Positions 4,791-64,000 are shown, numbered from the stretch's first letter. The stretch is 64,000 nt of DNA from Macrostomum hystrix (GCA_950097015.1 CATNEN010000034.1:1364001-1428000), one strand, 5' to 3'. The notes: generated from the letters alone by a model not told the origin. Numbers and translations are program-made.

Positions 4791-5184
4791 AGGTACGAGC
4801 TAAAACAGGTGTTTTTCTGACAGACAGGTGTATCAGGTGATGCCCTGTCAGATAGAGGGTTGTTGTTGGCCCATAGTAGAGCGCACTATCACCATGGGCT
4901 TTCTGACTGTTGTCAGCAGACCCCTAGTCCCGGCACGCGCTTCTAGTTAGAAGTTTTCGCAAAACCTTTGGGCGAATTTCGCGACAGGTGAATGTGGAAG
5001 ATAAATTATGCAAGCTCTAAAGTTTGCCCAGTCTGACACCAATATTGGATACGGTCACGTTCCACATACTGTGTTGAAAATGATTTATCGAGTCATGGAA
5101 AGCAAAACTTGCTCAAAGCGGTTCAAGTTATGTTTTATGTTCGAAGTTCGTGCAAAGGTCGTTAGTTACTTTTACAGATTTACA

Positions 5185-5190
5185 TATAAA
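5185..5190 (+). promoter_or_regulatory. Candidate TATA box of secreted repeat gene 1
   Basis: TATAAA about 60 nt upstream of ATG 5250 in an AT-rich leader. Motif match only. Confidence 0.3.
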
Positions 5191-5249
5191 GAAGAAGCAC
5201 ATGAAAAAAATATTTAACTAACTAAAATAGTTTTCATTTGAAAACAAAA

Positions 5250-8200
5250 ATGAAACCTCAGTTCAGGTGTATTATTCGAGTTCTTCTTCTGATCCTGCTT
5301 TGCGGCAGTCACAGTGAAGCTGCGCCAACAACCACCACGACAGCCGTATCTCTTCAAAACGAATCCACGAGTACAATAGCACCTGATGAATATACGGATG
5401 TACCTGTTGAAGGTAACGCTCATCAAAACGAATCTACAACAGCACCTGCTGAATCGAAGGATGAACATGTTAGAAACAACGTTCGTAAAAAAATACCTAA
5501 AATAGCACCTGATACAACAGCGCCTAACGAACCTACGGAAACACCTGTTAAAACCAATGCTCGTCAAAACGAATTTACAACAACACCTGATGAATTTTTG
5601 GATGCAGCTGTTGAAACTAGCGCTCGTCAAAACGAATCTACAACAGCACCTAATAAACTTATGAAAAAGCATGTTAAAACCAATGCTCGTCAAAACAAAT
5701 TTACAACAACACCTGATGAATTTATGGATGCAACTGTTGAAACTAGCGCTCGTCAAAACGAATCTACAACAGCACCTAATAAACTTATGAAAACGCATGT
5801 TAAAACCAATGCTCGTCAAAACGAATTTACAACAACACCTGATGAATTTTTGGATGCAAATGTTGAAACTAGCGCTCGTCAAAACGAATCTACAACAGCA
5901 CCTAATAAACTTATGAAAACGCATGTTAAAACCAATGCTCGTCAAAACGAATTTACAACAACACCTGATGAATTTTTGGATGCAGCTGTTGAAACTAGCG
6001 CTCGTCAAAACGAATCTACAACAGCACCTAATAAACTTATGAAAACGCATGTTAAAACCAATGCTCGTCAAAACAAATTTACAACAACACCTGATGAATT
6101 TATGGATGCAACTGTTGAAACTAGCGCTCGTCAAAACGAATCTACAACAGCACCTAATAAACTTATGAAAACGCATGTTAAAACCAATGCTCGTCAAAAC
6201 GAATTTACAACAACACCTGATGAATTTATGGATGCAACTGTTGAAACTAGCGCTCGTCAAAACGAATCTACAACAGCACCTAATAAACTTATGAAAACGC
6301 ATGTTAAAACCAATGCTCGTCAAAACGAATTTACAACAACACCTGATGAATTTATGGATGCAACTGTTGAAACTAGCGCTCGTCAAAACGAATCTACAAC
6401 AGCACCTAATAAACTTATGAAAACGCATGTTAAAACCAATGCTCGTCAAAACGAATTTACAACAACACCTGATGAATTTATGGATGCAACTGTTGAAACT
6501 AGCGCTCGTCAAAACGAATCTACAACAGCACCTAATAAACTTATGAAAACGCATGTTAAAACCAATGCTCGTCAAAACGAATTTACAACAACACCTGATG
6601 AATTTATGGATGCAACTGTTGAAACTAGCGCTCGTCAAAACGAATCTACAACAGCACCTAATAAACTTATGAAAACGCATGTTAAAACCAATGCTCGTCA
6701 AAACGAATTTACAACAACACCTGATGAATTTATGGATGAACCTGTTGAAACAAGAGCTCGTCAAGCTAAATTGACCATAGCACCTAATGAATCTAAGAAC
6801 GCACCAGTTAGAAAAAGCGCTCGTCGAAAGAAACCTACAACAGCACCTGATGAATCTACGGATACACCTGTTGGAACTGCAAGACCACCAGCGACTACTC
6901 GAGAAAAAATTGGGAAAATCGTGCAAAACCGTCACAATCGTAGATATAGTCGACTGAAGCACGGGCACATTAACGTCGGTCATAGTCAGCAAGTGAAACT
7001 TTTGAGCCAGCGCACAGATCAAAAGCACCGTAGACAATATAATGACAACCACCCCAAGCTCCAAAATCTTTCGCGTCAGATTCTCAACCGAAACTATAGA
7101 CGTAACAGACAGCATCCTATCCGTTACAATCGCCAAAACCACAGAATTTATCGACATGATCACAGTCACTTTAAAATGCGACACGAAAAGTATCGGATAC
7201 ATCATGACAATGGCCAACGTGAAGGAAATAAAATACATAAGGAACTGCGCGACAAACTGCGCGATAAACCACATGGGAAACATTCTGAACATCGCAACAA
7301 CCAGCTTGGCAAACATCCTGAACATCGCAACAACCAGCTTGGCAAACATTCTGAACATCGCAACAACCAGCTTGGCAAACATCCTGAACATCGCAACAAC
7401 CAGCTTGGCAAACATTCTGAACATCGCAACAACCAGCTTGGCAAACATCCTGAACATCGCAACAACCAGGTTGGCAAACATCCTGAACATCGCAACAACC
7501 AGGTCGGCAAACATTCTGAACATCGCAACAACCAGGTTGGCAAAAATCCTGAACATCGTAACAACCACCATGGCAAACGTCCTGAACATCGCAGCAACCA
7601 GGTTGGCAAAAATCCTGAACATCGTAACAACCACCATGGCAAACGTCCTGAACATCGCCGCAACCGATACGGCAAACGTCCTGAACATCGCCGCAACCGA
7701 TATGGCAGACGTCCTAAACATCGCCACAACCGATATGGCAACCGTCCTAAACATCGCCGCAACCGATACGGCAAACGTCCTGAACATCGCCGCAACCGAT
7801 ACGGCAAACGTCCTGAACATCGCCGCAACCGATATGGCAGACGTCCTAAACATCGCCACAACCGATATGGCAACCGTCCTAAACATCGCCGCAACCGATA
7901 CGGCAAACGTCCTAAACATCGCGGCAACCGATACGGCAACCGTCCTGAACATCGCCGCAACCGATATGGCAAACGTCCTGAACATCGCCGCAACCGATAT
8001 GGCAACCGTCCTGAACATCGCCGCAACCGATATGGCAAACGTCCTGAACATCGCCGCAACCGATATGGCAAACGTCCTGAACATCGCAACAACAGACGAA
8101 GCCGTCGAAATGTACATCGATTCAACCGACGTCACGAAGATGATAATGAGAATGACGGATCTAATGCAGGACGTGATGAATACTACAATAGTTTCAGAGG

Positions 8201-8345
8201 CACTATCAATTACTATCATCGGGGTTATCAGAGACGCAGGCTCCGCAGCTACAGAAGCACTCACGACACTGAGCGCATGGCTTCTCAACAGTGGAGCAGC
8301 CGCCGGTACAACAATTGGTACCAAGAGCATGGCACCGACCTATAG
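5250..8345 (+). CDS. Secreted two-domain tandem-repeat protein (1031 aa): Thr-rich 42-aa repeats followed by Arg/His/Asn/Lys/Tyr-rich 11-aa repeats
   Basis: Uninterrupted single-exon ORF. ATG in aaaATG context, then a signal-peptide-like MKPQFRCIIRVLLLILLCGSHSEA. Nine 126-bp units start at 5613 to 6621, and about 24 33-bp units span about 7290-8090. Non-repeat linkers and termini are also open in this frame; synonymous variants occur between units (CGC/CGT, GTT/GTC, TAC/TAT). Confidence 0.85.
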   Translation: MKPQFRCIIRVLLLILLCGSHSEAAPTTTTTAVSLQNESTSTIAPDEYTDVPVEGNAHQNESTTAPAESKDEHVRNNVRKKIPKIAPDTTAPNEPTETPVKTNARQNEFTTTPDEFLDAAVETSARQNESTTAPNKLMKKHVKTNARQNKFTTTPDEFMDATVETSARQNESTTAPNKLMKTHVKTNARQNEFTTTPDEFLDANVETSARQNESTTAPNKLMKTHVKTNARQNEFTTTPDEFLDAAVETSARQNESTTAPNKLMKTHVKTNARQNKFTTTPDEFMDATVETSARQNESTTAPNKLMKTHVKTNARQNEFTTTPDEFMDATVETSARQNESTTAPNKLMKTHVKTNARQNEFTTTPDEFMDATVETSARQNESTTAPNKLMKTHVKTNARQNEFTTTPDEFMDATVETSARQNESTTAPNKLMKTHVKTNARQNEFTTTPDEFMDATVETSARQNESTTAPNKLMKTHVKTNARQNEFTTTPDEFMDEPVETRARQAKLTIAPNESKNAPVRKSARRKKPTTAPDESTDTPVGTARPPATTREKIGKIVQNRHNRRYSRLKHGHINVGHSQQVKLLSQRTDQKHRRQYNDNHPKLQNLSRQILNRNYRRNRQHPIRYNRQNHRIYRHDHSHFKMRHEKYRIHHDNGQREGNKIHKELRDKLRDKPHGKHSEHRNNQLGKHPEHRNNQLGKHSEHRNNQLGKHPEHRNNQLGKHSEHRNNQLGKHPEHRNNQVGKHPEHRNNQVGKHSEHRNNQVGKNPEHRNNHHGKRPEHRSNQVGKNPEHRNNHHGKRPEHRRNRYGKRPEHRRNRYGRRPKHRHNRYGNRPKHRRNRYGKRPEHRRNRYGKRPEHRRNRYGRRPKHRHNRYGNRPKHRRNRYGKRPKHRGNRYGNRPEHRRNRYGKRPEHRRNRYGNRPEHRRNRYGKRPEHRRNRYGKRPEHRNNRRSRRNVHRFNRRHEDDNENDGSNAGRDEYYNSFRGTINYYHRGYQRRRLRSYRSTHDTERMASQQWSSRRYNNWYQEHGTDL

Positions 8346-8361
8346 ATTCCTAGCTATCACT

Positions 8362-8391
8362 CTATCAGACTAACAGTCCTTAGTCTGATAG
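8362..8391 (+). other. Perfect 12-bp stem-loop just after the gene 1 stop codon
   Basis: ctatcagactaa (8362-8373), loop cagtcc, ttagtctgatag (8380-8391); the arms are exact reverse complements. Confidence 0.7.
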
Positions 8392-8566
8392 CTACTAAAG
8401 TTTTAAATTATCTTCAATCAATAACATATACGCTCGTATATTAATTTGCGGTGTTGGTTAAACAATTCACTGTCAGTCTGCATAAATATATTGATAAATT
8501 TTGTCAGGTTAAAACCACCAAAACAGACTGATGGCTTGCTAAAAAGGATTAATAAGTAACTTGAAA

Positions 8567-8832
8567 ATGGATCGATTTTTCATTACACCGCTTTAAAAGC
8601 GGTAATCTTTGGAGAATTTTGCGAGAGACCATATTCGAAAGGCTATCAGAAGTAAACACCAGAACTAAGGACCTAATTCAGAATCGAAGCAGGACTTGAA
8701 CTCGGAATCGAAGCAGGATCTGAACTCGGAATCGTAGCAGGAGACAAACTCTGAATTGGAGCCGGACCTGAACTCGGAATCGAAGTAGGACCCAAACTCA
8801 GAGCGGAAACAGTAGCCATAATAGTGATCTTG
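8567..8832 (+). pseudogene. Degenerate relic of an 8-aa (NSESKQDL) repeat coding sequence
   Basis: Six 24-bp units read NSESKQDL/NSESKQDL/NSES*QET/NSELEPDL/NSESK*DP/NSERKQ*P in one frame, with largely synonymous differences (TCA/TCG/TCT, GAC/GAT, TTG/CTG, AAT/AAC). Upstream the same frame reads ENFARDHIRKAIRSKHQN*; ATG 8567 is in frame but several stops intervene. Confidence 0.45.
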
Positions 8833-9509
8833 ATGTAAAAAACGAAGAAGTTCATTCGCTATTGAATATATTTTAAATTTTTGTTCGTGAAAGTGAAAGC
8901 AGAGCGTAAAAGTTTAAGATCGAATCGATATAATGCTAAAAAAATTCTTCAGCAGCTTAACGATAAGCAGACTTAGAAATGAGCAAGTAGGCCAATACAG
9001 GTGAAGAGTTTTTTCTTTCATCGCCTTGCCTTACTGCAGTTCATGTGCCCCCGCTTGAGCTTTAAAATTTCACCTTTGCCTATCCTTAGATTCAAAGTAG
9101 GTCGCTGAATGAAAGTTATGTGACAAATGCAAATGCGCAACATTGCTTGTTTCAGTCTTGGAACTGTGCCGTTGCCTTAGTTTTAGGAAATGTAAAACTG
9201 GGAATTAAATGAACTGCCCGAATGTTAGCACAGCGAAATCGACAAGTGTCGACAACTGCATACTTAAAATGCAGTTCACGACGACGTCCTCATTATGTTG
9301 CGTTTCTCCTGTCTGGAAAGTCACACACTGCGGATCCGATTGGAAACTAATATTTTGAGGCACCTGCTCAGTGCAATCTGTCACTGAGTAATTTGGTATA
9401 AAGTCAAACGAAAAAACTTTTTTTTAGATGTTATAGACTTTTTAGACTTTTATCGACTATCGAGAAAAAATCCAACCTTAAAAAATCTATATCGTTAAGG
9501 TTTGCAAGA

Positions 9510-10129
9510 ATGAGTTTTTTGCTGACAGCAGTGTTGGTACTGCTGTTTGGTAGCGTGATGTCCGGATTAGCGCTTGGCAACCAAGAGTTTCATTCTTGTC
9601 CGACTTTCAGAGACTAGAAAAAAGCGACTGCAACATCGCGAGGCCCAAAGACCACAGGACAAGGAGCAAGTAACACCGCGTGGCCCGAAGACCACAGGAC
9701 AAGGAGGGACTCGCACTCCGCGAGGCCCAAAGACCACAGGACAAGGAGGGACTCGCCTCCGCGAGGCCCAAAGACCACAGGACAAGGAGGGACTCGCCTC
9801 CGCGAGGCCCAAAGACCACAGGACAAGGAGGGACTCGCACTCCGCGAGACCCAAAGACCACAGGACAAGGGGGGACTCGCACTCCGCGAGGCCCAAAGAC
9901 CACAGGACAAGGAGGGACTCGCACTCCGCGAGGCCCAAAGACCACAGGACAAGGAGGGACTCGCACTCCGCGAGGCCCAAAGACCACAGGACAAGGAGCA
10001 AGTGTAACACCACGTGGCCCGAAAACCACTGGGCAAGGATGGACTGGAACATCGCGTGGCCTGAAGACCACACGACAAGTGCCTTGGAAACTGGCTGTCG
10101 ATTGGGTGGAAACCGAATATTTTGTCTGA
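9510..10129 (+). pseudogene. Disrupted gene for a secreted 14-aa repeat protein (TPRGPKTTGQGGTR x11)
   Basis: ATG 9510 opens the signal-like MSFLLTAVLVLLFGSVMSGLALG, in frame with the first RGPKTTGQG unit but interrupted by TAG 9615-9617. Unit spacings 40,42,41,41,42... imply -2, -1 and -1 frameshifts. Core differences between units are synonymous in the RGPKTTGQG frame. Ends ...VDWVETEYFV-TGA 10129. Confidence 0.75.
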
Positions 10130-11825
10130 AATGTTTGGTTAAGTTATTTTTTAAGGAATGCGTCCTTTTACTTTAAGTTGAACCATAACCCAGTTTATTT
10201 TAAAAAAATCTGGGTTATGGTTTGGTATTGAGTGCTTTGCATCTACATACTTTGCATTAAGTTGCCTTTGTCTATTTCAGTCAAATACGATGAGTTACTT
10301 GGGTGCACGAATTTTTCATTAATATAATTCTTTAAACGAGCGTGGAAGCAATTCCGAAAGTTTGGAAAGAGCATTGGGAATCCAGCGCTTCAACTGATGT
10401 TTCTCTTTTTTTATCGTTACGCGAACAACCACTCAGTGCTGCGACGAACTCGATTAACGCTACTCATAATTAAAAGTAGGCACAAAGAACGAAATAAAAC
10501 TTTGTTTCCGCTATAAGATATTGTCAGCTCACTGCGAAACTACTCGGGGTCGGGTCTCAAGACCCATGTCAGTATAAATGCAACAATAATCCTGGAGATC
10601 AGCAAAGCTCATTGTGACGGAGAAGCAGCGAAGCGCACTTCTTTGTGTGCTCACTCCCTTACTTCCAACAACTCCTTTGGGGCACTAGACGTGCTACGCA
10701 CCAGCAAAGCTTCGTACTCTGCACCGCCTTGCAGGACATACTTCGTACATCGATCTCGATAGCTTGTTTCTGTCCTTAAAAAGTTGCATAATTATAGCGA
10801 AGAATTCATTCGCTGCTTCCTGCACAACACCCAAACGAGTCTTGGGAGTCAAAGCTCAGTCCTTCATGTTGCCCCAATCAAAGCAGGGCTTCCTTATGAA
10901 CCAACACTGCATGTTAAGTGCAGCTTCTGTCGTTCCTGACCGGAGGAACTGTATTGTTTGGCCTGACATCAACGCACTTCTAAATATCGTTTGTCAAAAA
11001 TAAAAATATCGCTTTGTTGACATACAGAGTTGGACCAAGAAAAAATGATATTTTCAGGGAACGGTGGGCACTGAGATTGGTGACAGTCAATCCGCTGCAA
11101 GCGAAGAGGCCATTCTGCCCAATTCGCTCATCCCTGAGCACACAAGCCTACCGATATGGATAGGTGTGTACATCAGCACTACAGCAGCACTCGTATTTTA
11201 TCATCGGACAGAGTGTCCACTCCATGAGTCTTGGGGTTTGGCCTCATGGGTGCAAATTGTTCGAAAAACCCGAAACCTTCTCCGCAGCTGGCCCGAAAAT
11301 TAACTTGGTCAAGCTGCTACACTCACCACCCCACTGTCGGAGCCGTTTGATACAAGTCGAGCCCTGAGTGTGTCCCTCAATCTAAACTTCGAGCCATTGT
11401 CAGGTCAGTAAGTTAGTTTTTTGCCTTTCTTTTTTTAGTGCCCGTGATAGTAAAGCGTTTAAGGCACGACGCAAAATACCTTGTCATAAAATTGTGACGT
11501 TAGTGCCAGTGGAGCGCAGCTGCTGGGCTTCAATGGGAGCAGTGCAACTTCAACACGTGCTAATAAGGAAAATTGTACCTTGGCTACTGCTCAATGCTTG
11601 CAAGGCGAGACTATTATGTTTTGCTTGCAATGTCTACAAAGTCACGTAAAGCCGTGAATGAATCGATTCGCAAAGAGAGTGAGATCAGCTCGGTATCATC
11701 TGCTCGCTCAAAATGCTACCGGCTGAAAACGAATATAAAATTGCCGTTTTTTTGTTTATTCATGCTAAAAAATCCATAATCAGACATCTACAAACAAACG
11801 AGCGAATTTCAGTCGATTTGCAAAA

Positions 11826-12953
11826 ATGCGAATTCTGTTCCTAGCAGCGCTGATATTGCTGATAGCTAGCGGACTAGTCGGAATTGCTGTCGCTATCGAC
11901 GATTTTTCAGACATTTCAACTGGCTCGAAGTCTCTCTGGGAGGACTCTGTGGTTGGCAGTGCCGGTTATCACGCCAAAAATTCTCGTACGTGGAATGCTA
12001 GGCACGCTGATCCAGCTGCCGAGAGCCTCGCACGTGCCGGAAAATCCCGACATCAGTTCAGTGCTAATCGACATGAATCTCAAAAGGTCGCAGTACACAA
12101 TGGCCCCAAAGAGAGCCCTCAGCTTCCAATACATCAAAGAAAGCGTGACCATTTGAGACGCGAACATTACGAGCACAGTGAGAAGCGTCGAGTATACGGA
12201 CGAAAAAAACAATACAGGGACAACAAGAGACATCAAAGACGTCACGAACGCAAGAAACATCAAGGACGTCACGAAAGCAAGAAACATCTAGGACGTTACG
12301 AACGCAAAAAGCATCGAGGACGTTACGAACACAAGAAACATCGAGGACGTTACGAACGCAAGAAGCATCGAGGACGTCACGAAAGCAAGAAACATCGAGG
12401 ACGTTACGAACGCAAGAAACATCGAGGACGTCACGAAAGCAAGAAGCATAGAGGACGTTACGAACGCAAGAAGCATCGAGGACGTCACGAACGCAAGAAG
12501 CATCGAGGACGTTACGAACACAAGAAATATCGAGGACGTCACGAACGCAAGAAGCATCGAGGACGTTACGAACGCAAGAAATATCGAGGACGTCACGAAC
12601 GCAAGAAGCATCGAGGACGTTACGAAAGCAAGAAACATCGAGGACGTCACGAACGCAAGAAGCATCGAGGACGTTACGAACACAAGAAATATCGAGGACG
12701 TCACGAACGCAAGAAGCATCGAGGACGTTACGAACGCAAGAAATATCGAGGACGTCACGAACGCAAGAAGCATCGAGGACGTTACGAAAGCAAGAAACAT
12801 CGAGGACGCTACGAACGCAAGAAACATCGAGGACGTTACGAACGCAAGAAATATCGAGGACGTTACGAACGCAAGAAACATCGAGGAAGTTATGGATATG
12901 GAAGTGTAGGCTATAAGGGACATGGTCGATATAGACGCAACCGTCAGAGATGA
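11826..12953 (+). CDS. Secreted highly basic His/Arg/Lys/Tyr repeat protein (375 aa; 24 x R[YH]E[RSH]KK[HY]RG)
   Basis: Single-exon ORF, aaaATG context, signal-like MRILFLAALILLIASGLVGIAVA, unique N-terminal region, 27-bp repeats about 12240-12888 with synonymous variants (CGA/AGA, AAG/AAA), G/Y/R tail. Confidence 0.88.
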   Translation: MRILFLAALILLIASGLVGIAVAIDDFSDISTGSKSLWEDSVVGSAGYHAKNSRTWNARHADPAAESLARAGKSRHQFSANRHESQKVAVHNGPKESPQLPIHQRKRDHLRREHYEHSEKRRVYGRKKQYRDNKRHQRRHERKKHQGRHESKKHLGRYERKKHRGRYEHKKHRGRYERKKHRGRHESKKHRGRYERKKHRGRHESKKHRGRYERKKHRGRHERKKHRGRYEHKKYRGRHERKKHRGRYERKKYRGRHERKKHRGRYESKKHRGRHERKKHRGRYEHKKYRGRHERKKHRGRYERKKYRGRHERKKHRGRYESKKHRGRYERKKHRGRYERKKYRGRYERKKHRGSYGYGSVGYKGHGRYRRNRQR

Positions 12954-14137
12954 CACGACAGCCATCGAAAGCACACGTCTTAGGACCGGGTTACACCGAG
13001 CGCCAAGTAGAGCTACAAATGAACTTCAGACCAGCTTAAAAACAGGCGCAGAGAACACTCAAAACAAACTTCAAATCCTTTTCGGTTGAGGAACTTTCTC
13101 ACAGCACAATTAAACGGAATTTTCGACAAACAGTAAAGAATTTGAATTGGTCTTACTTAATTTTGAAACAAATTAACATACAACGTGCTATAAGATGAGA
13201 ATGGGAGCGAATATAGCCAAGCAGAATCTGTTAGAATTAGTTCAAATGTAAAAATTTAATAATGAAAGGTAAATACCTAATTGAATTTATTCAAAGAAAA
13301 GCTCCAGAGTAACATGGAAAGAATTAAAGCAATTTTCGTAAATTGTTTCATTGTATTTCAGCATTTAATTTTTAGAATTCATGTGTCACAATGTCCAGAA
13401 AAGAAGTGAAAGTTAGATGGACCAATTAGTCGCTACATGTAGCAAAGGCGAATGCTTTTAGAAGACGACGATAAAAATGGCTGTCACAGATTTGAATGAG
13501 ATGAAAGTAGCCATATTATTATTTGGCCACGGCTAGAAACGCACAAAACTGTACATGCTGTGCGAATTAAAAAGCATAAGAAAAAGATCCTGTCTTGAAT
13601 TGAGGCGCAAGCAAGCATATCAAAATAGAAATCAGTATTGAATTTTGTATGACTCTACAGTTCAAAGTTCAAAGGGACAATTTTCAAGCAAACGTGCATG
13701 CCAGGTAAACATTCGCTTGCTTTGTGCGTATAAAAGTACATAATACCTCAGGTAACTAAATATACTATAAATCTCTTGCAATTACACCCACGCATAATAT
13801 AACGAACTAAAATAAAAAACGATTGCAGTTTAATTAATAGTGGGACTTTGCGCATTTTGTTTCACAATTGTAAGCAGGTTTACGATTACAATCCGTCCTT
13901 CGCTTCAAACCTTTCTTCCAATCTAATTTCAGTATTGATTCAATCGAATCTAATAGATTTTCATTGGCCGAGTTCAATCACGTGTGTGGGCTGAGGGTGG
14001 TAAAAAGGCGTCACGTGCCTAGCTTTCCGGAGCTATTTTTTTAATGTTTCTAAAAATAGCTACAAACGAAGCCATCTTGTGAATACTAGATGAACAAAAT
14101 GTGTACGGGTATAGAGAAACCTACGCAGTAGGTTGCG

Positions 14138-17100
14138 TCACAGAACGCCCAACTGCACGCGCACCTGCTTAGCCAGCTCCATCAAGCCAGGGAAGATGGG
14201 CAGGTCGGTCCGCACCGCCGCCCGGATCCGGTGCTCGCTGATGAAGTAGCGGAAATCTTCCCGGTGCTGCCGGATCAGGTGGTCCCGGGCCGCGTTGCAG
14301 TAGGTGAGCAGGCTGTTAATTGTAAACAGCAGGTAATAGGCGTTAACCACCAGCTGCGGCTTCAGCGTAAATTCCGATCGGCTCTTTCCAGCCGTGTCTG
14401 CCTCGTCGTCAACTTCGCCGGCCGACGAACTGGCAGCCGCGTCGAATAGATGACACAGCAGGCGGACGGACTCCGTCAGCATGATCAGCATGCCTTCGCC
14501 TTCGGCGGCCAGAAGCTCAACGGCCTGGCTCTCGCTCACTATCGATCCGTCGGAGCGGCCAATCAGCGGCAGGCCGGCGCCCCCGCCACCGCCGCCTGAG
14601 CTGCTCCTACAAAGCGAACAGTTGGAAAGACATGACAGGAGACTTTGGAATGCCGACCGTATTTCCAGCAGCCCTCCAAAAGTTACCGCTGATAAGAGTT
14701 TAAATGGCACTGTTTAAGACCACTGGCTGGCTGCTGTAACGATTAGGGAGCCTGTAGCCCAGTGGTTAGAGCTTTGGAATTCTGACCAAGAGGTCGGGAG
14801 TTCGAATCGCAGCCCAAAAAACAAGTTGTGTCCTTTAGCAAGACACTTGATTCCTTAGTCAGCTGGTCAGTTGGGGTAGAAATTGGGGTGGCTGTGGCGG
14901 CCACCACAGCCCATGGACTGAACAGCTGTACGCAGCCTTTTGGAAGCGCAACGCGATAGCTGCGGCTGTGTGCCATTGGCTGTACATGTGGCCCAACTGG
15001 GCTGTGTGTAATTTCTTTCCTAACTGAACCAATTGTTCAAAGTAAATAAAACATAATGCCAAAAGAAAAAAATAGATTATTGACAAGAGAAGACAGCAAG
15101 GTTTTCCAAAACAGGAAAGCTACGATTGTTGAAGATAATCAGAGAGCAATTAATTTATGTCGGAAAAACACCAAAAGACAAGCCCTTCAGTGAAAATAAT
15201 ACTTATTTCCAAAGCGCAAGATTACAAAGCATGGAATAGTCCGACAAAGAAATCACACAGCCCATTGTCTAACGGAGGCAGATTGTTGTATCAAATAGAA
15301 TTAAGACTGACGAAAGAAGCAAGCACTGCAGTATAGTGATTCTATGATGATGCTAGGGGTTTCCACGGGTTTCCAGTGAGGCAGAGGGGTTTCCACGGGT
15401 TTCCAGTGAAGCATAGGGGTTTTCAGTGAGGCAGAGGGGTTTTCAGTGAGGCAGAGGGGTTTCCACGGGTTTCCAGTGAGGCAGAGGGGTTTCCACGGGT
15501 TTCCAGTGAAGCATAGGGGTTTTCAGTGAGGCAGAGGGGTTTTCAGTGAGACAGAGGGGTTTTCAGTGAGGCAGAGGGGTTTCCAGTGAGGCAGATGGGT
15601 TTCCACGGGTTTCCAGTGAAGCATAGGGGTTTTCAGTGAGGCAGAGGGGTTTTCAGTGAGACAGAGGGGTTTTCAGTGAGGCAGAGGGGTTTTCAGTGAG
15701 ACAGAGGGGTTTCCAGTGAAGCATAGGGGTTTTCAGTGAGACAGAGGGGTTTTCAGTGAGGCAGAGGGGTTTTCAATGAGGCAGAGGGGTTTTCAGTGAG
15801 ACAGAGGGGTTTTCAGTGAGACAGAGGGGTTTTCAGTGAAGCAGAGGGGTTTTCAGTGAGACAGAGGGGTTTTCAGTGAGACAGAGGGGTTTTCAGTGAG
15901 ACAGAGGGGTTTTCAGTGAGACAGAGGGGTTTTCAGTGAGACAGAGGGGTTTTCAGTGAGACAGAGGGGTTTTCAGTGAGACAGAGGGGTTTTCAGTGAG
16001 GCAGAGGGGCTTTCAGTGAGACAGAGGGGTTTTCAGTGAGACAGAGGGGTTTTCAGTGAGACAGAGGGGTTTTCAGTGAGGCAGAGGGGCTTTCAGTGAG
16101 GCAGAGGGGTTTTCAGTGAGGCAGAGGGGTTTTCAGTCTCCTTCTGGAAGAGGTAACCCAAATCTAAAACTGATGTGAGATTAAGAAACAGAAAAAGTCA
16201 TGTCTGCTATTGTGCGGCGGTAAATTCCAAATTAATAAAAGAAGAAATTTGTTTGAAAAAAGTTAATTTTTTAATAAAAATTGACAGTTCTAAACGCGCA
16301 TCAAAAAAGTTCATCCAAAAGGAGACACGGTGAGTTATCCGGCTCATATCTTACCATGCACTGATGCCAGTTCTGAGTGAATGAAGGGGATGGATTCGTT
16401 CAATAAAAACACAGAAAAATTCAATGTTGCATGCCGAGAGCATGCTAACATAACAAGTGAAGCAACTGAACTCAATATTTGAGATATTTGTAACCAGCAA
16501 ATAATATTAAATATTTAAATCAAGTACATAGATCAGTAAACGTCACAGAAAATGCTATAAGCTTGCTAACTCGCCGCTATAACAAATTTTCGGTCAGTTC
16601 TTATTAACAGTAGAAAGACAGCGTGTGTATTTCAAATACCTGTCACTTTTCTGTTTCTCACAAAATATTCAACCAATCGCCCTGAAATTCCAGAAAACTG
16701 GCTAAAAGTTTCCGCTCTATCCGATGCAAATCTCCCAGAGTCACTCCCAGATTCGTTTGGGAGCTTTTGTGAAGTAGGCAGCGGGTATTTGAAATACCCC
16801 GTGGTCTTCCCCTGGGGATAATGGCGTGGTGTTTCAAAATGCTTAAAATCACTAAGGTGACGTTTTAGTATAATATTAGTTTTATTTTATACCTTTAAAT
16901 ATTAATTTTACGTAAGAAATTAGTTAATTTTTGTCCATATAATTTCATTAGTAAGCATTAATAGTGGCGTTTTTTTCAATGAGTAACACAAACGCAGACA
17001 AACTTTCACCTGATTCCAAACTCCCTGAAAATGTATAAAACATTTGCTTTCAGTTAACTTTATTTAGAAAGTCTTGAAAATCAACATTTTCTGCCTTGAA

Positions 17101-29631: not shown

Positions 29632-31455
29632 TCAAACTCTGGTGATGGGGGAGTAGGCCAGAGTTCGACTGGAGCCCGCCTGCGGCCTGATAGGCACGGC
29701 GGGGAAGTGCTGCTGATGGTGCAACCAGCCAACTGGAACCTGCTGCCGCCCGGAGCTGACGATGGCAGGACCCTGGCCATCCAGTGGCCGATGGAGAGTC
29801 GCCGTCGGTGGTGGCGGCGGTGGCGGCGGCGGCAGCTGGGAGAACGCTCCGGCCAGGCCTTCGACAGACGATGACAGCCCACCGGCCGAGGATTCCTCGT
29901 CGAAGGAGGCCTGCCGATTCGGCCGGTGATGAAGCGAAGCCCGGGCAGCTGGCGGCCTCTGCCGCTGCCGACGCTGCTGCTGCAAGTAGTCCAGGTCGGG
30001 CGCCAGATCTTCGCTGCCGACTTGGTCGACGCTGCCGCAGCTGCCGGATCCGGCCGTGGCCCCTTCACGCCGCGATTGCGACTGCTTCGGTGAGCCGCCA
30101 GAAGCCTCGGGCAGCAGCTGGGCCTTGCCGGAGTTGGCCGCGGCGGCGTCGACTGCCAGCATCCAGCGGTTGACTTCATCTTCTGTGGACAATGGCGCAG
30201 GCCTGGCGCAGGGCAGGCAGCGGGCCAGCAGGTGGTTGGCGCTGCGGTCGAAGGCCAGAATCAGCAGCGGCTCCAAGGCGGCTCGAGAGAAGCCAAGGAT
30301 TGTGAGCATCTTGTAGAGCTCGGTGCTCACCTGGAGTTGAAGCAATTTCGGCGCAGGAATCTCGTAGATACTCGAAAAGTTCTGCTTTAAAATAAACATG
30401 CTATTAAATTGCGGTTGCTATGCTGTTGCTATGTGATTTAAAACTGATCCTACACTTTTGCCATACCCTTGCTGTTGTTTTAGCTGTATTTTTGCTACGC
30501 TATTGGATAGCACTAGAGTTACAAACGCATTTTTTTATTCTTGATCATACCATTTCCTTGAAAAGTTTTTTGTACTGCCTCTGTGCCCATGACTGCTCAC
30601 CTGGTACTGCGGATCGACCAAAATCAGCAGAAACAACGGGTACCAGCAGAGGAAGTGCACTGCGCAGACGGCGCTGAGCACACGCTGGCGGTTCCGCTTG
30701 AGTCCGGCCAGGCTGTCCAACTTTTTATCCACGGCCTCCATGCTCACTGGCAGCTCCTCCTGCTGGCCGCTGAGTATGATGAGTTTGGCCTGCACAGTCT
30801 TGCCGATGACCTTGTGAAATACGGCCAGGTAATAGGCAGCCGCAGCCAGCGCCAGGGACACAATCAGAATCCACATGGTGTACACTATGTAGTTCTTCAC
30901 CTGGCCGTAAACAAACAGGCAGCGCTTGGCTTTGCTAGACTCGAAATTGGCGCCAATCAGGGTTGGCCCCAGGTGCAGAATAATGCTGCCAGTGTACACC
31001 AGAACAGTGCCGAACAGCACGCAGCACAGGCTGCCCTTCGGTCGCTTTTTCACCGCCGTCGGACAATTGTCGAACAGGTAGACCTCGCAGCAGGCGGCTG
31101 CAACCAGGTTGAACACCGAGGCGGTCATCAGCACGATGTAGCTGGTGCCCAGCGAGTTGCAGCTGCTGGCTGGCACCGCGCCGGCTTCGAGGCCTCTGGC
31201 AAAGATGACGCAATAGGCTGACAGGGCTGAGTTCAGCAGGCAGGCATGGACTAGAAAGGCCGACGACAGACGGCGGGTATGCGACTGCAGTAGGACCGCG
31301 ATCAGGAGCGCCGCATTGGCTGACAGACCGACGCCGGCTACCAGGTACATCACCGCCTGCTCCACTGCGCCATGCAGGGCCTCCGCGTCAGCGTGCTCGT
31401 GCTCCGATGCAGCCGCCGCCGCATTTGATGCGGACGCTGCTAAGTCCTCCGACAT
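29632..31455 (-). CDS. Orphan rhodopsin-like (class A) GPCR, about 517 aa; exons 31455-30601 and 30330-29632
   Basis: Six hydrophobic segments in exon 1 (TM1 GLSANAALL, TM6 FLCWYPLF). A phase-0 splice supplies TM7 (ELYKMLTILGFSRAALEPLLILAF) and a long low-complexity C-tail. Loosely SREB-like (inference). Confidence 0.85.
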
Positions 31456-55017: not shown

Positions 55018-56379
55018 ATGCGCGAGTGCATTTCTATTCACATCGGCCAAGCCGGAGTGCAGATTGGCAATGCATGTTGGGAGCTCTTCTGCCTGGAGCA
55101 CGGCATGCAGCCCGACGGAATGTTGCAAGCCGGCAACAATGGTTGTTCTGTTGAGACCTTCTTCTCCGAGACAAGCTCTGGGCGCTACGTTCCTAGGACT
55201 GTATTTATCGATCTAGAGCCAACGGTGATAGACGAGATTCGCACTGGAACCTACCGACAGCTCTTCCACCCAGAGCAGCTCATCACTGGAAAGGAGGATG
55301 CATCTAACAACTACGCACGTGGACATTACACAATCGGCAAGGAGGTCATCAACAATGTGCGCGACGTGGTGTCGCGAGTGGCGGAGAACTGCAATGGTCT
55401 GCAGGGCTTCTTCGTGTTCCACTCATTTGGCGGCGGCACTGGATCCGGGGTCACCTCTCTGCTGTTAGACAGGCTGTCCTCTGAATACGGCAAGAAATCC
55501 AAGCTGCAGATTTCTATCTACCCTGCACCGCAGGTCTGCACCGCAGTTGTGGAGCCGTTAAACTCTATATTATGCACTCATGGCACAATGCGGCACTCGG
55601 ACTGTTCAGTTATTTTGGACAACGAAGCTATATATGAAATCTGCCGGAAAAACCTGGACATTCAGAAGCCGTCGTACACCAATCTGAACAGACTAATCAG
55701 TCAAGTGATTTCGTCCATCACGGCTTCCTTGCGATTCGAAGGGGCGCTTAACGTGGACATGACTGAGTTTCAGACAAATCTCGTGCCTTACCCCAAGATC
55801 CACTTCCCGCTGGCAACGTACGCACCCATCATCTCGACTGAAAAGGCGAACCACGAGCAACTTAGTGTTCGTGATATCACAAGCGCAGGCTTTGAGCCAT
55901 CGAACCAAATGGTAAAGTGCGACCCTCGGCACGGCAAGTACATAGCCTGCTGCCTTCTCTACCGCGGAGATGTAAACTGTAAAGAAGTCAACGATGCTGT
56001 TCAAATGATAAAAAGCAAGCGTGAAATCCAGTTTGTGGATTGGTGCCCCACTGGCTTCAAGGTTGGCATTAACTACCAGCCACCCATCACAGTACCTGGG
56101 GGCGATCAGGCTAAGGTACCTCGAGCGGTCTGCTTGCTGAGCAACACCACTGCGATAGCAGAAGCCTGGGACCGGCTGGCGTACAAATTTGACCTTTTGT
56201 ACTCGAAGCGTGCATTCGTGCACTGGTACGTCGGTGAAGGCATGGAGGAAGGAGAATTCGCCGAGGCCCGCGAAGACCTAAGCGCCATGCAGAAGGATTA
56301 TGAGGAGGTCGGAGTTGACTTCGTCGAGGGTGAGGAAGAAGAGGTCGAAGAAATGGTTAGAGACGGAATTGATGAATAA
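55018..56379 (+). CDS. TUBA: Divergent intronless alpha-tubulin (453 aa)
   Basis: [13 protein letters not shown] start, GGGTGSG signature, [41 protein letters not shown], acidic tail; AATAAA overlaps the stop. Confidence 0.98.
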
Positions 56380-62906: not shown

Positions 62907-63103
62907 CCTTGTCCAGTAAAGTTAACACAGGTTCTTCAACAGATAACCAGCAGGATAAACCGATGACTTCAAGGGCACACTCCAGCTCAAGCTGCAGTCC
63001 TAGAAAGTTTGATGAAAAGATTGCATTGTTAAAGGCAAATGAGTCAGAATCCAATGAAAAGTTTGACAGGTTGTTGTATGAATTGAACGTTCTTAAAGGG
63101 CAT
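62907..63103 (+). CDS. Isolated internal exon of an unidentified gene
   Basis: ttgccgttctag acceptor, GTAAGT donor, open frame ending in coiled-coil-like KFDEKIALLK...LLYELNVLKGH; partner exons not resolved. Confidence 0.45.
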
Positions 63104-64000
63104 GTAAGTATTTTTAAAAAGCTGTCATTTGTTTTAATGATATGGTTTTGTTTCTACTCTAATTTTCAATCGAATCATAGGAACTGTATGACAGAAATTG
63201 GAAATTTATTTCATATAGCTAAGCCCTAATTTAATAAAATCGTTGTCAAGCCTACGCTTAGTATACTGTACATTGTTTTATTGTATTTTTTATCCTCAAC
63301 ATTTTATCCACTATTGCCTAGCTAGGCCTATATCAATTTCGAATCTTGCCATTGGTATTGTACTTTATTGTACTTTATTGTAGCTATTTAGCTGCCTTCT
63401 GGGTGGCCTTAATTTTTTTGGAAATAAAATTACACTTCGAGTAAATTTACAATAAATGTACAAATTTAGGCTAAGTTAGGATCTTCTGGTGAGGTGAAGA
63501 AATGATAAAAATCTGTTGACAAATTTTGGAGATATTCAATTGCAATCAACCAAGTTAGCAAGCAAATAAGATTTTTATGTTTAGCGTAATTGTTTGGTGA
63601 TTTGGAATTTTATGTTTCTTTGTAATATAGAAAGGCTAAAAGAAGCAAGTCCACTTTGTTGCAACTTATGCCTATTGTTTTATTTAATTGTTGTACTGAT
63701 TTTATAACTTGCATAAAATCATATATAAAAAATGCATACATATAAATATGAACCTAAATTTACTTCCAGAGCTAATAACACATGGCATTGCCTGTCATGA
63801 ATTAGTGAAAAAATGGAGGTCATAAATGCTGATTGGTGTAGCTTATGTAGTTTCTATGTCCTAATTAATTTTTTTTCAATGACACATTTTCGATTCTTGG
63901 AAATGGCCAAATAACTTGCTTGTTTTCTATTTAAAATTAAAGAAATTGACAGGAAATGACAATTCAATTGACATTAAAGAAATCACAACATGTTAGGATG

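Follow-up and report, generated by a model that had tools for sequence, protein, structure and literature searches.

Our analysis argues, with moderate confidence, that a locus in Macrostomum hystrix holds two functional single-exon genes of restricted lineage, together with a paralogue that has decayed; the encoded proteins of the secretory pathway would be disordered, cysteine-free and extremely cationic. The evidence comes from the window, i.e., the whole stretch of 64,000 nt that was analyzed, and from searches of the same genome and of protein databases.

Organization of the locus

On the + strand, the window carries two intact ORFs (genes 1 and 3), each with a signal-peptide-like leader and strongly basic repeats, both lying where the original prediction had placed them. 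Between them are a disrupted signal-peptide gene (gene 2) and an older repeat relic, again as predicted. The single-exon ORFs with their leaders and basic arrays bear out the description of the locus as a set of intronless, leader-bearing, cationic repeat genes. The start contexts quoted for 9510, 11826 and 5250 agree with the sequence, and recomputing the charges of the repeat units returned the same values (+4 per 11 aa, +4 per 9 aa and +3 per 14 aa). The features of gene 1 are as follows:

5185..5190, + strand: TATAAA box, 65 nt 5′ of the ATG
5250..8345, + strand: gene 1, predicted intact single-exon ATG ORF of 1031 aa (ORF scan; the first ATG is at 5250)
5250..5315, + strand: signal-peptide-like leader with a basic n-region, a VLLLILLC core and GSHSEA followed by AP (heuristic only)
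5513..6764, + strand: array A, 126 nt x 9.9 copies, 97% identical, with a 42-aa acidic Thr-rich unit (TRF)
6765..7272, + strand: unique basic linker, R/N/H/K/Q-rich, open only in the sense and codon-aligned antisense frames
7273..8093, + strand: array B, 33 nt x 24.9 copies, with 11-aa units (TRF)
8094..8345, + strand: unique Tyr/Trp/Arg-rich C-terminal tail and stop codon

The gene 1 product has a pI of 10.7 and no Cys in its mature part. Its first half is built of the acidic Thr-rich 42-aa repeat, which makes it a two-block protein; this sequon-bearing array A (residues 89–505) had been overlooked in the original prediction. The N-terminal block (residues 23–505) has a net charge of −13 and contains 20% Thr and 11 N-x-S/T sequons. 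In the tandem repeats of mucin-type PTS domains, S+T+P amounts to some 40% or more. The gene 1 block is mucin-like, but its S+T+P content of 31% falls short of the typical values. The C-terminal half, by contrast with the acidic first half, carries a net charge of +105. The units of array B change gradually from LGKH(P/S)EHRNNQ early in the array to YGKRPEHRRNR late in it, and G/R/K/H/S make up 58% of this basic repeat, in which N, P, E and Y occur as well. AlphaFold gave no confident fold for the protein (mean pLDDT 41.6).

The second intact ORF, gene 3, is smaller and simpler:

11734..11739, + strand: TATAAA box, 92 nt 5′ of the ATG
11817..11871, + strand: 55-nt start and signal cassette, gene 3 copy
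11826..12953, + strand: gene 3, predicted intact single-exon ATG ORF of 375 aa (ORF scan)
12224..12892, + strand: array of 27 nt x 24.8 copies, with the 9-aa unit RKKHRGRYE and frequent H/Y swaps (TRF)

Its product has a pI of 11.5, a mature net charge of +103 and no Cys in the mature part, and AlphaFold likewise found no confident fold (pTM 0.23). The leader, MRILFLAALILLIASGLVGIAVA followed by IDD, resembles a signal peptide by heuristic rules; its 22-residue hydrophobic stretch could instead serve as a signal anchor.

Between the two intact genes the following elements were found:

8668..8799, no strand assigned: degenerate 24-nt array of 5.5 copies with 76% matches, the relic (TRF)
9397..9402, + strand: TATAAA box of gene 2, 113 nt 5′ of the ATG
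9501..9555, + strand: 55-nt start and signal cassette, gene 2 copy
9510..9617, + strand: signal-peptide ORF of gene 2, 35 codons, with TAG at 9615-9617
9637..10079, + strand: array of gene 2, 42 nt x 10.6 copies, unit RGPKTTGQGGTRTP (TRF)

The first repeat unit of gene 2 is in the same frame as the signal ORF, and the frame shifts near 9671, 9757 and 9798. Since one stop and three frameshifts break its reading frame, gene 2 is best described as a pseudogene; a leader and a first unit in one frame, followed by lesions, are what a coding gene leaves behind when it decays. An intron of 56–58 nt that would restore gene 2, considered by eye, was rejected because the leader and the first unit already share one frame. 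The death of gene 2 implies turnover at the locus, and in this sense the birth-and-death mode that had been proposed holds. The relic has stops in all + frames and is overlapped by a 60-aa ORF of the − strand (8673-8855). A DUF4551-like gene is found at 14138-14710.

Coding potential of the intact ORFs

The most serious alternative is that the ORFs are not functional genes and represent minisatellite arrays that stay open by chance behind a chance ATG and a hydrophobic start, i.e., at most unexpressed or neutral proto-genes; we consider this unlikely. Minisatellite tandem repeats occupy 33% of the window, so repeat ORFs are a common background here, and 14 of the 27 array periods are divisible by 3. 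The arrays of the locus are open in up to five of the six frames. The variants among the repeat units show no excess of third-position (synonymous) changes, log-odds of codon usage, with three genes from the window as the training set, did not separate the frames, and no homologues were found (see below). Many other arrays in the genome also translate into ORFs of 150–400 aa, but these background ORFs lack a unique leader.

It is the unique parts of the genes that speak against chance. Outside the repeats, gene 1 has 1.0 kb and gene 3 has 0.4 kb of sequence, and no frame of it is open but the sense frame and, for gene 1, the aligned antisense frame, which is open across 1038 codons; the remaining + frames of the unique parts contain 4–23 stops. 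In shuffled sequences, the non-repeat parts of gene 1 stayed open in 0.6%, <0.02% and 1.3% of cases, and the non-repeat part of gene 3 in 0.2%. Both proteins show, by heuristic rules, a basic n-region, a hydrophobic core of 8–20 residues and small residues at −3/−1. When a simple filter that asks for a signal peptide and a hydrophilic ORF was run over the window, it passed genes 1 and 3 only, which lie within 8 kb; elsewhere in the genome, one ORF passed in a sample of 200 kb, and it resembles a translated microsatellite. Furthermore, TATAAA stands at promoter distance before all three starts (at −65, −113 and −92 for genes 1, 2 and 3), while a TATAAA at −130 to −50 precedes 2.75% of all ATGs in the window. 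The former common frame of leader and first unit in gene 2 also argues against arrays that are open merely by chance.

Relationship among the three genes

The original prediction had envisaged a common gene scaffold and start context for all three genes, and this proved right for genes 2 and 3 only. Their cassettes are 71% identical over 55 nt around the ATG, a score reached in none of 2000 dinucleotide shuffles. A pattern derived from the alignment of the two cassettes (first 35 places, up to 3 mismatches) detected the gene 2 and gene 3 sites and no others in the 220 Mb genome. Gene 1 showed no similarity to either of them. The suggested co-regulation did not find support either: beyond the TATA box, the upstream regions have weakly enriched 6-mers in common, and 7-mers are not enriched.

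No relationship was detected when the repeat units of the genes were compared with one another. A likeness between the gene 1 and gene 3 units, both of which contain AACATCG, was not significant (156 of 2000 shuffles). A search of the species' own genome found the units to be specific to the locus. The repeats arose in situ, and their independent origin, as previously proposed, stands.

These data also bring to mind a nursery for new secreted proteins, a scenario that we rate as rather improbable. Here, a TATA-promoter and signal-peptide cassette, that of genes 2 and 3, would have been duplicated locally, and each copy would have gained its own body when an unrelated minisatellite expanded in situ. 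Minisatellites fill one-third of the region, and one product would already be dead. If true, this would mean that coding sequence was born by repeat expansion behind a reusable export signal.

Search for relatives

Neither protein matched any Pfam-A family at E <= 0.01, no homologue was found among 1.84 billion representative proteins, and look-ups of the exact products returned no record. The N-terminus of gene 3, used in a word-based protein search as a region of the whole protein and by itself, gave no match. An exhaustive HMMER search with full-length gene 1 returned 191 matches, all inside the repeat regions; those inspected are unrelated periodic proteins, none of them KR-rich. The ESM Atlas feature search yielded no usable match for gene 3, and the look-alikes of gene 1 (a per-hexamer repeat protein, semenogelin-2 and a polysialoglycoprotein) were below threshold (<=0.80) and were treated as noise. 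Within the genome itself, the unique regions are single-copy and have no paralogue, and matches to the gene 3 repeat elsewhere are translated minisatellites without leaders. The genome also has, at G000:C1:5429056-5429306, a stretch with 67% identity to the gene 3 array. The sole close relative in the protein database is M. lignano (80% identity for alkaline phosphatase); when its alkaline phosphatase contig was examined for synteny, only that gene and ~200 nt beside it were in common, and the contig did not reach the cluster.

Discussion

Possible function of the encoded proteins

Taken together, the results favor functional genes, each of which would be transcribed from its own TATA-box promoter. 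In the gene 1 protein, a mildly acidic Thr-rich block, probably N- and O-glycosylated, would precede a polycation of His, Arg, Asn and Tyr with a charge of about +105; in the gene 3 protein, some 25 copies of RKKHRGRYE (+103) would come after the leader and a short unique stretch. Such proteins may be packed into gland granules and, once released, may bind or condense polyanions electrostatically, with sulfated glycans, mucus, the glycocalyx or the surfaces of microbes as candidate partners; metal or oxidative cross-links may be added through His and Tyr. As to the organ, our first guess, made because of the known biology of the genus, would be a reproductive gland (prostate/seminal or female-tract). 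Epidermal mucus or defence glands would come next in this guess, and the adhesive organ would be the least likely place.

A role in the duo-gland adhesive organ, where a small cohesive polycation similar to ap3 or to the KR regions would link glue and glycocalyx and be released by a polyanion, deserves separate treatment, and we regard it as very unlikely. Known adhesion proteins do have a comparable build: ap3 combines a signal peptide with a K/R/G/H/S low-complexity region, and Mlig-ap1 has KR regions of >3,600 aa (PMC9229212, PMC6410801). The gene 3 repeat domain has 50% K+R, 15% H and 79% G/R/K/H/S in all; against such a role, it also carries 11% Glu and 9% Tyr. Moreover, macrostomids are reported to lack ap3 (PMC9229212), the gene 3 protein is ten times smaller than ap3, and no KR-rich protein occurs among the best 150 of the 191 gene 1 matches.

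The DOPA chemistry put forward in the original prediction, i.e., a DOPA/quinone-tanned eggshell, egg cement or wet glue in which Tyr stands by Lys/Arg plus His, appears highly improbable. L-DOPA has been described in permanent adhesion only (PMC9229212). Tyr does adjoin Arg/Lys in the late gene 1 units and in gene 3, and His makes up 14–15% of the basic repeats. The Tyr content, however, is 2.7% in gene 1 and 7.2% in gene 3, reaching 8.9% in the best domain, while in DOPA proteins it is usually 10–20% or more. In addition, a non-exhaustive look at ORFs and Pfam matches in the window did not reveal a tyrosinase gene. More generally, none of the particular materials suggested in the original prediction (glue, eggshell, rhabdite, semen) gained support.

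We give equally little credence to polyprotein precursors from which cleavage at basic residues would release many short, cationic peptides rich in His. These would be antimicrobials of the histatin kind or else amidated and neuropeptide-like (...NRY-amide from YGKR). Such precursors would be in line with the 11 G[KR]R motifs of gene 1, with the 42 dibasic positions across the repeats of gene 3 and with a composition like that of salivary histatins. However, Pro after a basic site disfavors convertase cleavage, and Pro follows all 11 G[KR]R motifs of gene 1, so that cleavage there is disfavored; in gene 3, the basic pairs are not preceded by Gly. Acidic spacers are absent, a glycoprotein-like block of 480 aa is atypical of prohormones, and Pfam gave no match. 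Finally, a protamine-like sperm nuclear basic protein was rejected because a hydrophobic leader directly follows the ATG in both ORFs.

If expressed, the two secretory genes that we favor would be compact single-exon additions to a class of flatworm proteins, the secreted polycation repeat proteins, to which the charge-driven temporary glue of Macrostomum also belongs; being small, they are easy to clone. A dead paralogue nearby and a common leader cassette provide a concrete case for the origin and turnover of orphan secretory genes. Gene 1, which would unite a glycoprotein-like acidic block and a polycation in one chain, would be of some interest for biomaterials. For the genus Macrostomum, such findings are unsurprising.

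Comparison with known systems

Histatins, other His-rich cationic secreted peptides and the mussel byssal protein mfp-4 are secreted, disordered and rich in His, Lys/Arg, Tyr and Gly, and the His-rich mfp-4 has short tandem repeats that bind metal. The proteins described here resemble histatins and mfp-4 in composition, predicted secretion and disorder, but no homology is seen (Pfam gives no match), and organism and size differ.

Among flatworm proteins, the closest in design are the KR regions of Mlig-ap1 and the ap3 proteins (Mile-ap3, Tmed-ap3), which share with ours a predicted signal peptide and a low-complexity, tandem, extremely basic body. The KR regions of Mlig-ap1 are positively charged, and the ap1/ap3 polycations are thought to act by charge because heparin blocks attachment (PMC6410801). 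K, R, G, H and S account for 87.7% of Tmed-ap3 (PMC9229212). The ap1/ap3 adhesion proteins have no homologues outside flatworms (PMC6410801, PMC9229212), and we found no sequence link between them and the genes of the locus. Unlike the ap1/ap3 regions of 3,600–3,700 aa, the genes described here encode 375 and 1031 aa, with basic repeats of 224 and 273 aa, and their units also contain Glu, Tyr, Asn and Pro.

Reproductive secretions of the genus offer another parallel. In Macrostomum, transcripts of the tail region are enriched in signal peptides, and genes linked to reproduction prove harder to trace from species to species (PMC7336406); among the prostate-limited transcripts of M. lignano, 31 of 76 had no BLAST hit (PMC5977470). 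Although tandem-repeat polycations are not described among Mlig-pro1-76, which come from another species and are likened to our genes by description only, these putative seminal fluid proteins are secreted, fast-evolving and in many cases without BLAST hits, much like the orphan locus with turnover that is described here (PMC5977470, PMC7336406).

Results

Two Intact Reading Frames and a Disrupted One with Signal-Peptide-Type Leaders

All ORFs were read in unspliced form, not as spliced models. The cluster comprises the following frames:

5250–8345 (+), gene 1, first ATG at 5250 and stop at 8343–8345, 1031 aa
9510 (+), gene 2, ATG ORF of 35 codons ended by TAG at 9615–9617
11826–12953 (+), gene 3, 375 aa

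Genes 1 and 3 are intact, as the original prediction had it, and both begin with a leader of the signal-peptide type: a basic n-region, the core VLLLILLC and GSHSEA followed by AP in gene 1, and MR with a long hydrophobic core that closes with AVA and is followed by IDD in gene 3. The strongly basic repeats claimed for the cluster were recovered with the expected net charges, namely +4 per unit in gene 1 (33 nt, 24.9 copies), +4 in gene 3 (27 nt, 24.8 copies) and +3 in gene 2 (42 nt, 10.6 copies), and the three units are indeed mutually unrelated. Charge density is extreme, K+R making up 50% and His 15% of the gene 3 repeats; mature proteins 1 and 3 contain no Cys.

Residues 89–505 of gene 1 are encoded by a distinct 126-nt array (9.9 copies, 97% identity), absent from the original prediction, whose 42-aa unit is Thr-rich and mildly acidic. 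The N-terminal block (residues 23–505) has a net charge of −13, an S+T+P content of 31% and 11 N-x-S/T sequons. Since this Thr-rich acidic block is joined to a C-terminal half with a net charge of +105, gene 1 encodes a two-block protein rather than a plain polycation. The codon-aligned antisense frame (5214–8330, −) is also open, over 1038 codons, since TTA, CTA and TCA codons are missing from the sense strand ahead of its last codon; the antisense product is hydrophobic repeat nonsense.

Genuine Genes or Open Minisatellites

Minisatellites occupy 33% of the 64-kb window (21.0 kb, 27 arrays, periods of 4–126 nt), the period being divisible by three in 14 of the 27. Strong strand skew was observed in several of them. 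Many translate to long leaderless ORFs in several frames, as do other arrays of the genome (150–400 aa), and in the gene 1 and gene 3 arrays up to five of the six frames are likewise open, so that the repeats say little about coding status. The repeat-unit variants showed no third-position excess (variable columns by codon position 5/5/5, 5/3/3 and 6/6/3), and a codon-usage test was uninformative on the coding frame.

The unique segments of gene 1 (263, 508 and 249 nt) contain no sense-frame stops vs. 4–23 in the other forward frames, and shuffling left them open in 0.6%, <0.02% and 1.3% of cases, respectively; for the unique N-terminus of gene 3 (398 nt) the figure was 0.2%. We also screened crudely for ATG ORFs of ≥80 aa with a hydrophilic body and, close to the start, a hydrophobic core free of charged residues. 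Genes 1 and 3 alone passed in the window, and 200 kb of other DNA of the genome yielded a single ORF, which resembles a translated microsatellite. Each of the three start codons is preceded by a TATAAA, at a distance of 65 nt in gene 1, 113 nt in gene 2 and 92 nt in gene 3; across the window, only 2.75% of ATGs have this motif between −130 and −50. The 300 nt upstream (4950–5249, 9210–9509 and 11526–11825) have 11 hexamers in common vs. 3.3 in shuffles. Among the common words are TGCAAG/GTGCAA and the 7-mer TTATGTT; the number of common 7-mers was not significant (28 of 500 shuffles). In our estimation, genes 1 and 3 are quite probably genuine, expressed genes.

Gene 2 Has Probably Decayed and Shares Its Start with Gene 3

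The first RGPKTTGQG unit of gene 2 lies in the leader frame directly beyond the TAG. The frame first shifts between units 1 and 2, near 9671, and shifts further near 9757 and 9798, at two consecutive 41-nt units; the repeat finishes in a third frame, at 10129. With leader and first unit in phase and then one nonsense codon and three frameshifts, gene 2 is, judging from its sequence, a decayed coding gene, in line with the disruption predicted. The two 41-nt units are identical, which argues for real, duplicated variants and not random read errors. A short intron rescuing the gene was considered and dropped.

Between genes 1 and 2, a degenerate 24-nt array (8668–8799) has stops in every forward frame. 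It is overlapped by a 60-aa ATG ORF (8673–8855, −) whose N-terminus is hydrophobic and which carries an 8-aa repeat rich in Ser and Pro; this ORF may encode a tiny secreted peptide or have arisen by chance.

Genes 2 and 3 have 55 nt in common (−9 to +46 relative to the ATG, 71% identity; blastn E 0.006), with a local score of 30 vs. 18.0 ± 2.4, reached by none of 2000 dinucleotide shuffles. A 35-place pattern from this alignment, run over the whole genome (220 Mb, 42 contigs) with up to 3 mismatches, matched the gene 2 and gene 3 sites only; the reversed control gave zero matches. The flanks and leader of gene 1 revealed no similarity to those of genes 2 and 3, so the common scaffold proposed for the cluster holds for two genes and not for the third. 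Genome-wide, the gene 1 and gene 3 arrays are confined to this locus, except that the 27-nt array of gene 3 has a single weak match on another contig, C1 (5429056–5429306, 67% identity over 250 nt, E 1.8e-8), where there may be another gene whose basic repeat is related.

Because the common 55 nt are unique in the genome and the repeat units unrelated, genes 2 and 3 appear to derive from local duplication of one start-and-leader cassette, the two bodies having grown in situ, each on its own. Gene 1 is a neighbour of the same type, its kinship to them not being demonstrable. That the locus is a nursery, where a reusable promoter and leader cassette gains new coding bodies through minisatellite expansion, seems to us rather improbable.

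Relatives and Genomic Surroundings

Pfam gave no matches for genes 1 and 3, whose unique parts are single copy in their own genome, and no exact-product records were found. The gene 3 N-terminus had no word-based protein matches, whether searched alone or within the full-length protein. An exhaustive HMMER search with full-length gene 1 yielded 191 matches, all within the two repeat regions (15–46% identity); those inspected were unrelated periodic proteins, and among the 150 listed there were no KR-rich polycations. AlphaFold without alignment predicted no fold, with a mean pLDDT of 41.6 for gene 1 and a pTM of 0.23 for gene 3; the single long helix modelled across the charged repeats of gene 3 we deem untrustworthy. 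As far as visible, the genes appear to be orphans, the near-relative comparison covering one annotated proteome; the sole close relative within the protein collections is M. lignano.

No Rfam families or tRNAs were detected in the window. Its other genes and ORFs include:

14138–14710 (−), ORF weakly matching the C-terminal end of DUF4551 (E 4e-4)
30535–31455 (−), rhodopsin-type receptor-like, intronless single ORF
55018–56379 (+), tubulin, intronless single ORF, 453 aa
59159–60934 (−), alkaline phosphatase, intronless, 591 aa

The first probably belongs to a spliced gene as its last exon, with the minisatellites at 15–21 kb lying in the introns. The top phosphatase matches are from M. lignano (80% and 75% identity), and beyond this species identity drops to 43–48%, which places the window in a Macrostomum species other than M. 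lignano. Between M. lignano NIVC01000824.1 and the window at 55–63 kb, similarity is confined to the orthologous phosphatase gene and some 200 nt (62953–63154); next to the phosphatase lie two reprolysin/disintegrin genes in M. lignano and the tubulin gene in the window.

Discussion

We suggest that the proteins of genes 1 and 3 would enter the secretory pathway and be stored in gland granules, their extracellular role being to bind or condense polyanions. The K/R-rich (KR) regions of the flatworm adhesion protein Mlig-ap1 are thought to act in this way, given that attachment is blocked by polyanions, heparin among them (PMC6410801). As a first guess, the source organ may be a reproductive gland, because in Macrostomum tail-region transcripts are enriched in signal peptides and reproduction-related genes are harder to detect across species (PMC7336406), and 31 of 76 prostate-limited transcripts of M. 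lignano had no BLAST hit (PMC5977470).

Composition might instead point to an adhesive-organ protein, G/R/K/H/S making up 79% of the gene 3 repeats and 88% in the adhesion protein Tmed-ap3 (PMC9229212), but this reading fails on size. The case for a precursor processed into peptides is weakened because in gene 1 a Pro comes directly after each of the 11 G[KR]R sites. The DOPA or eggshell chemistry originally envisaged does not fit a Tyr content of just 2.7% (gene 1) and 7.2% (gene 3).

Secreted low-complexity polycations are already known in flatworms; to these, the locus under study would add two compact single-exon genes, together with a paralogue that has died and a common leader cassette.
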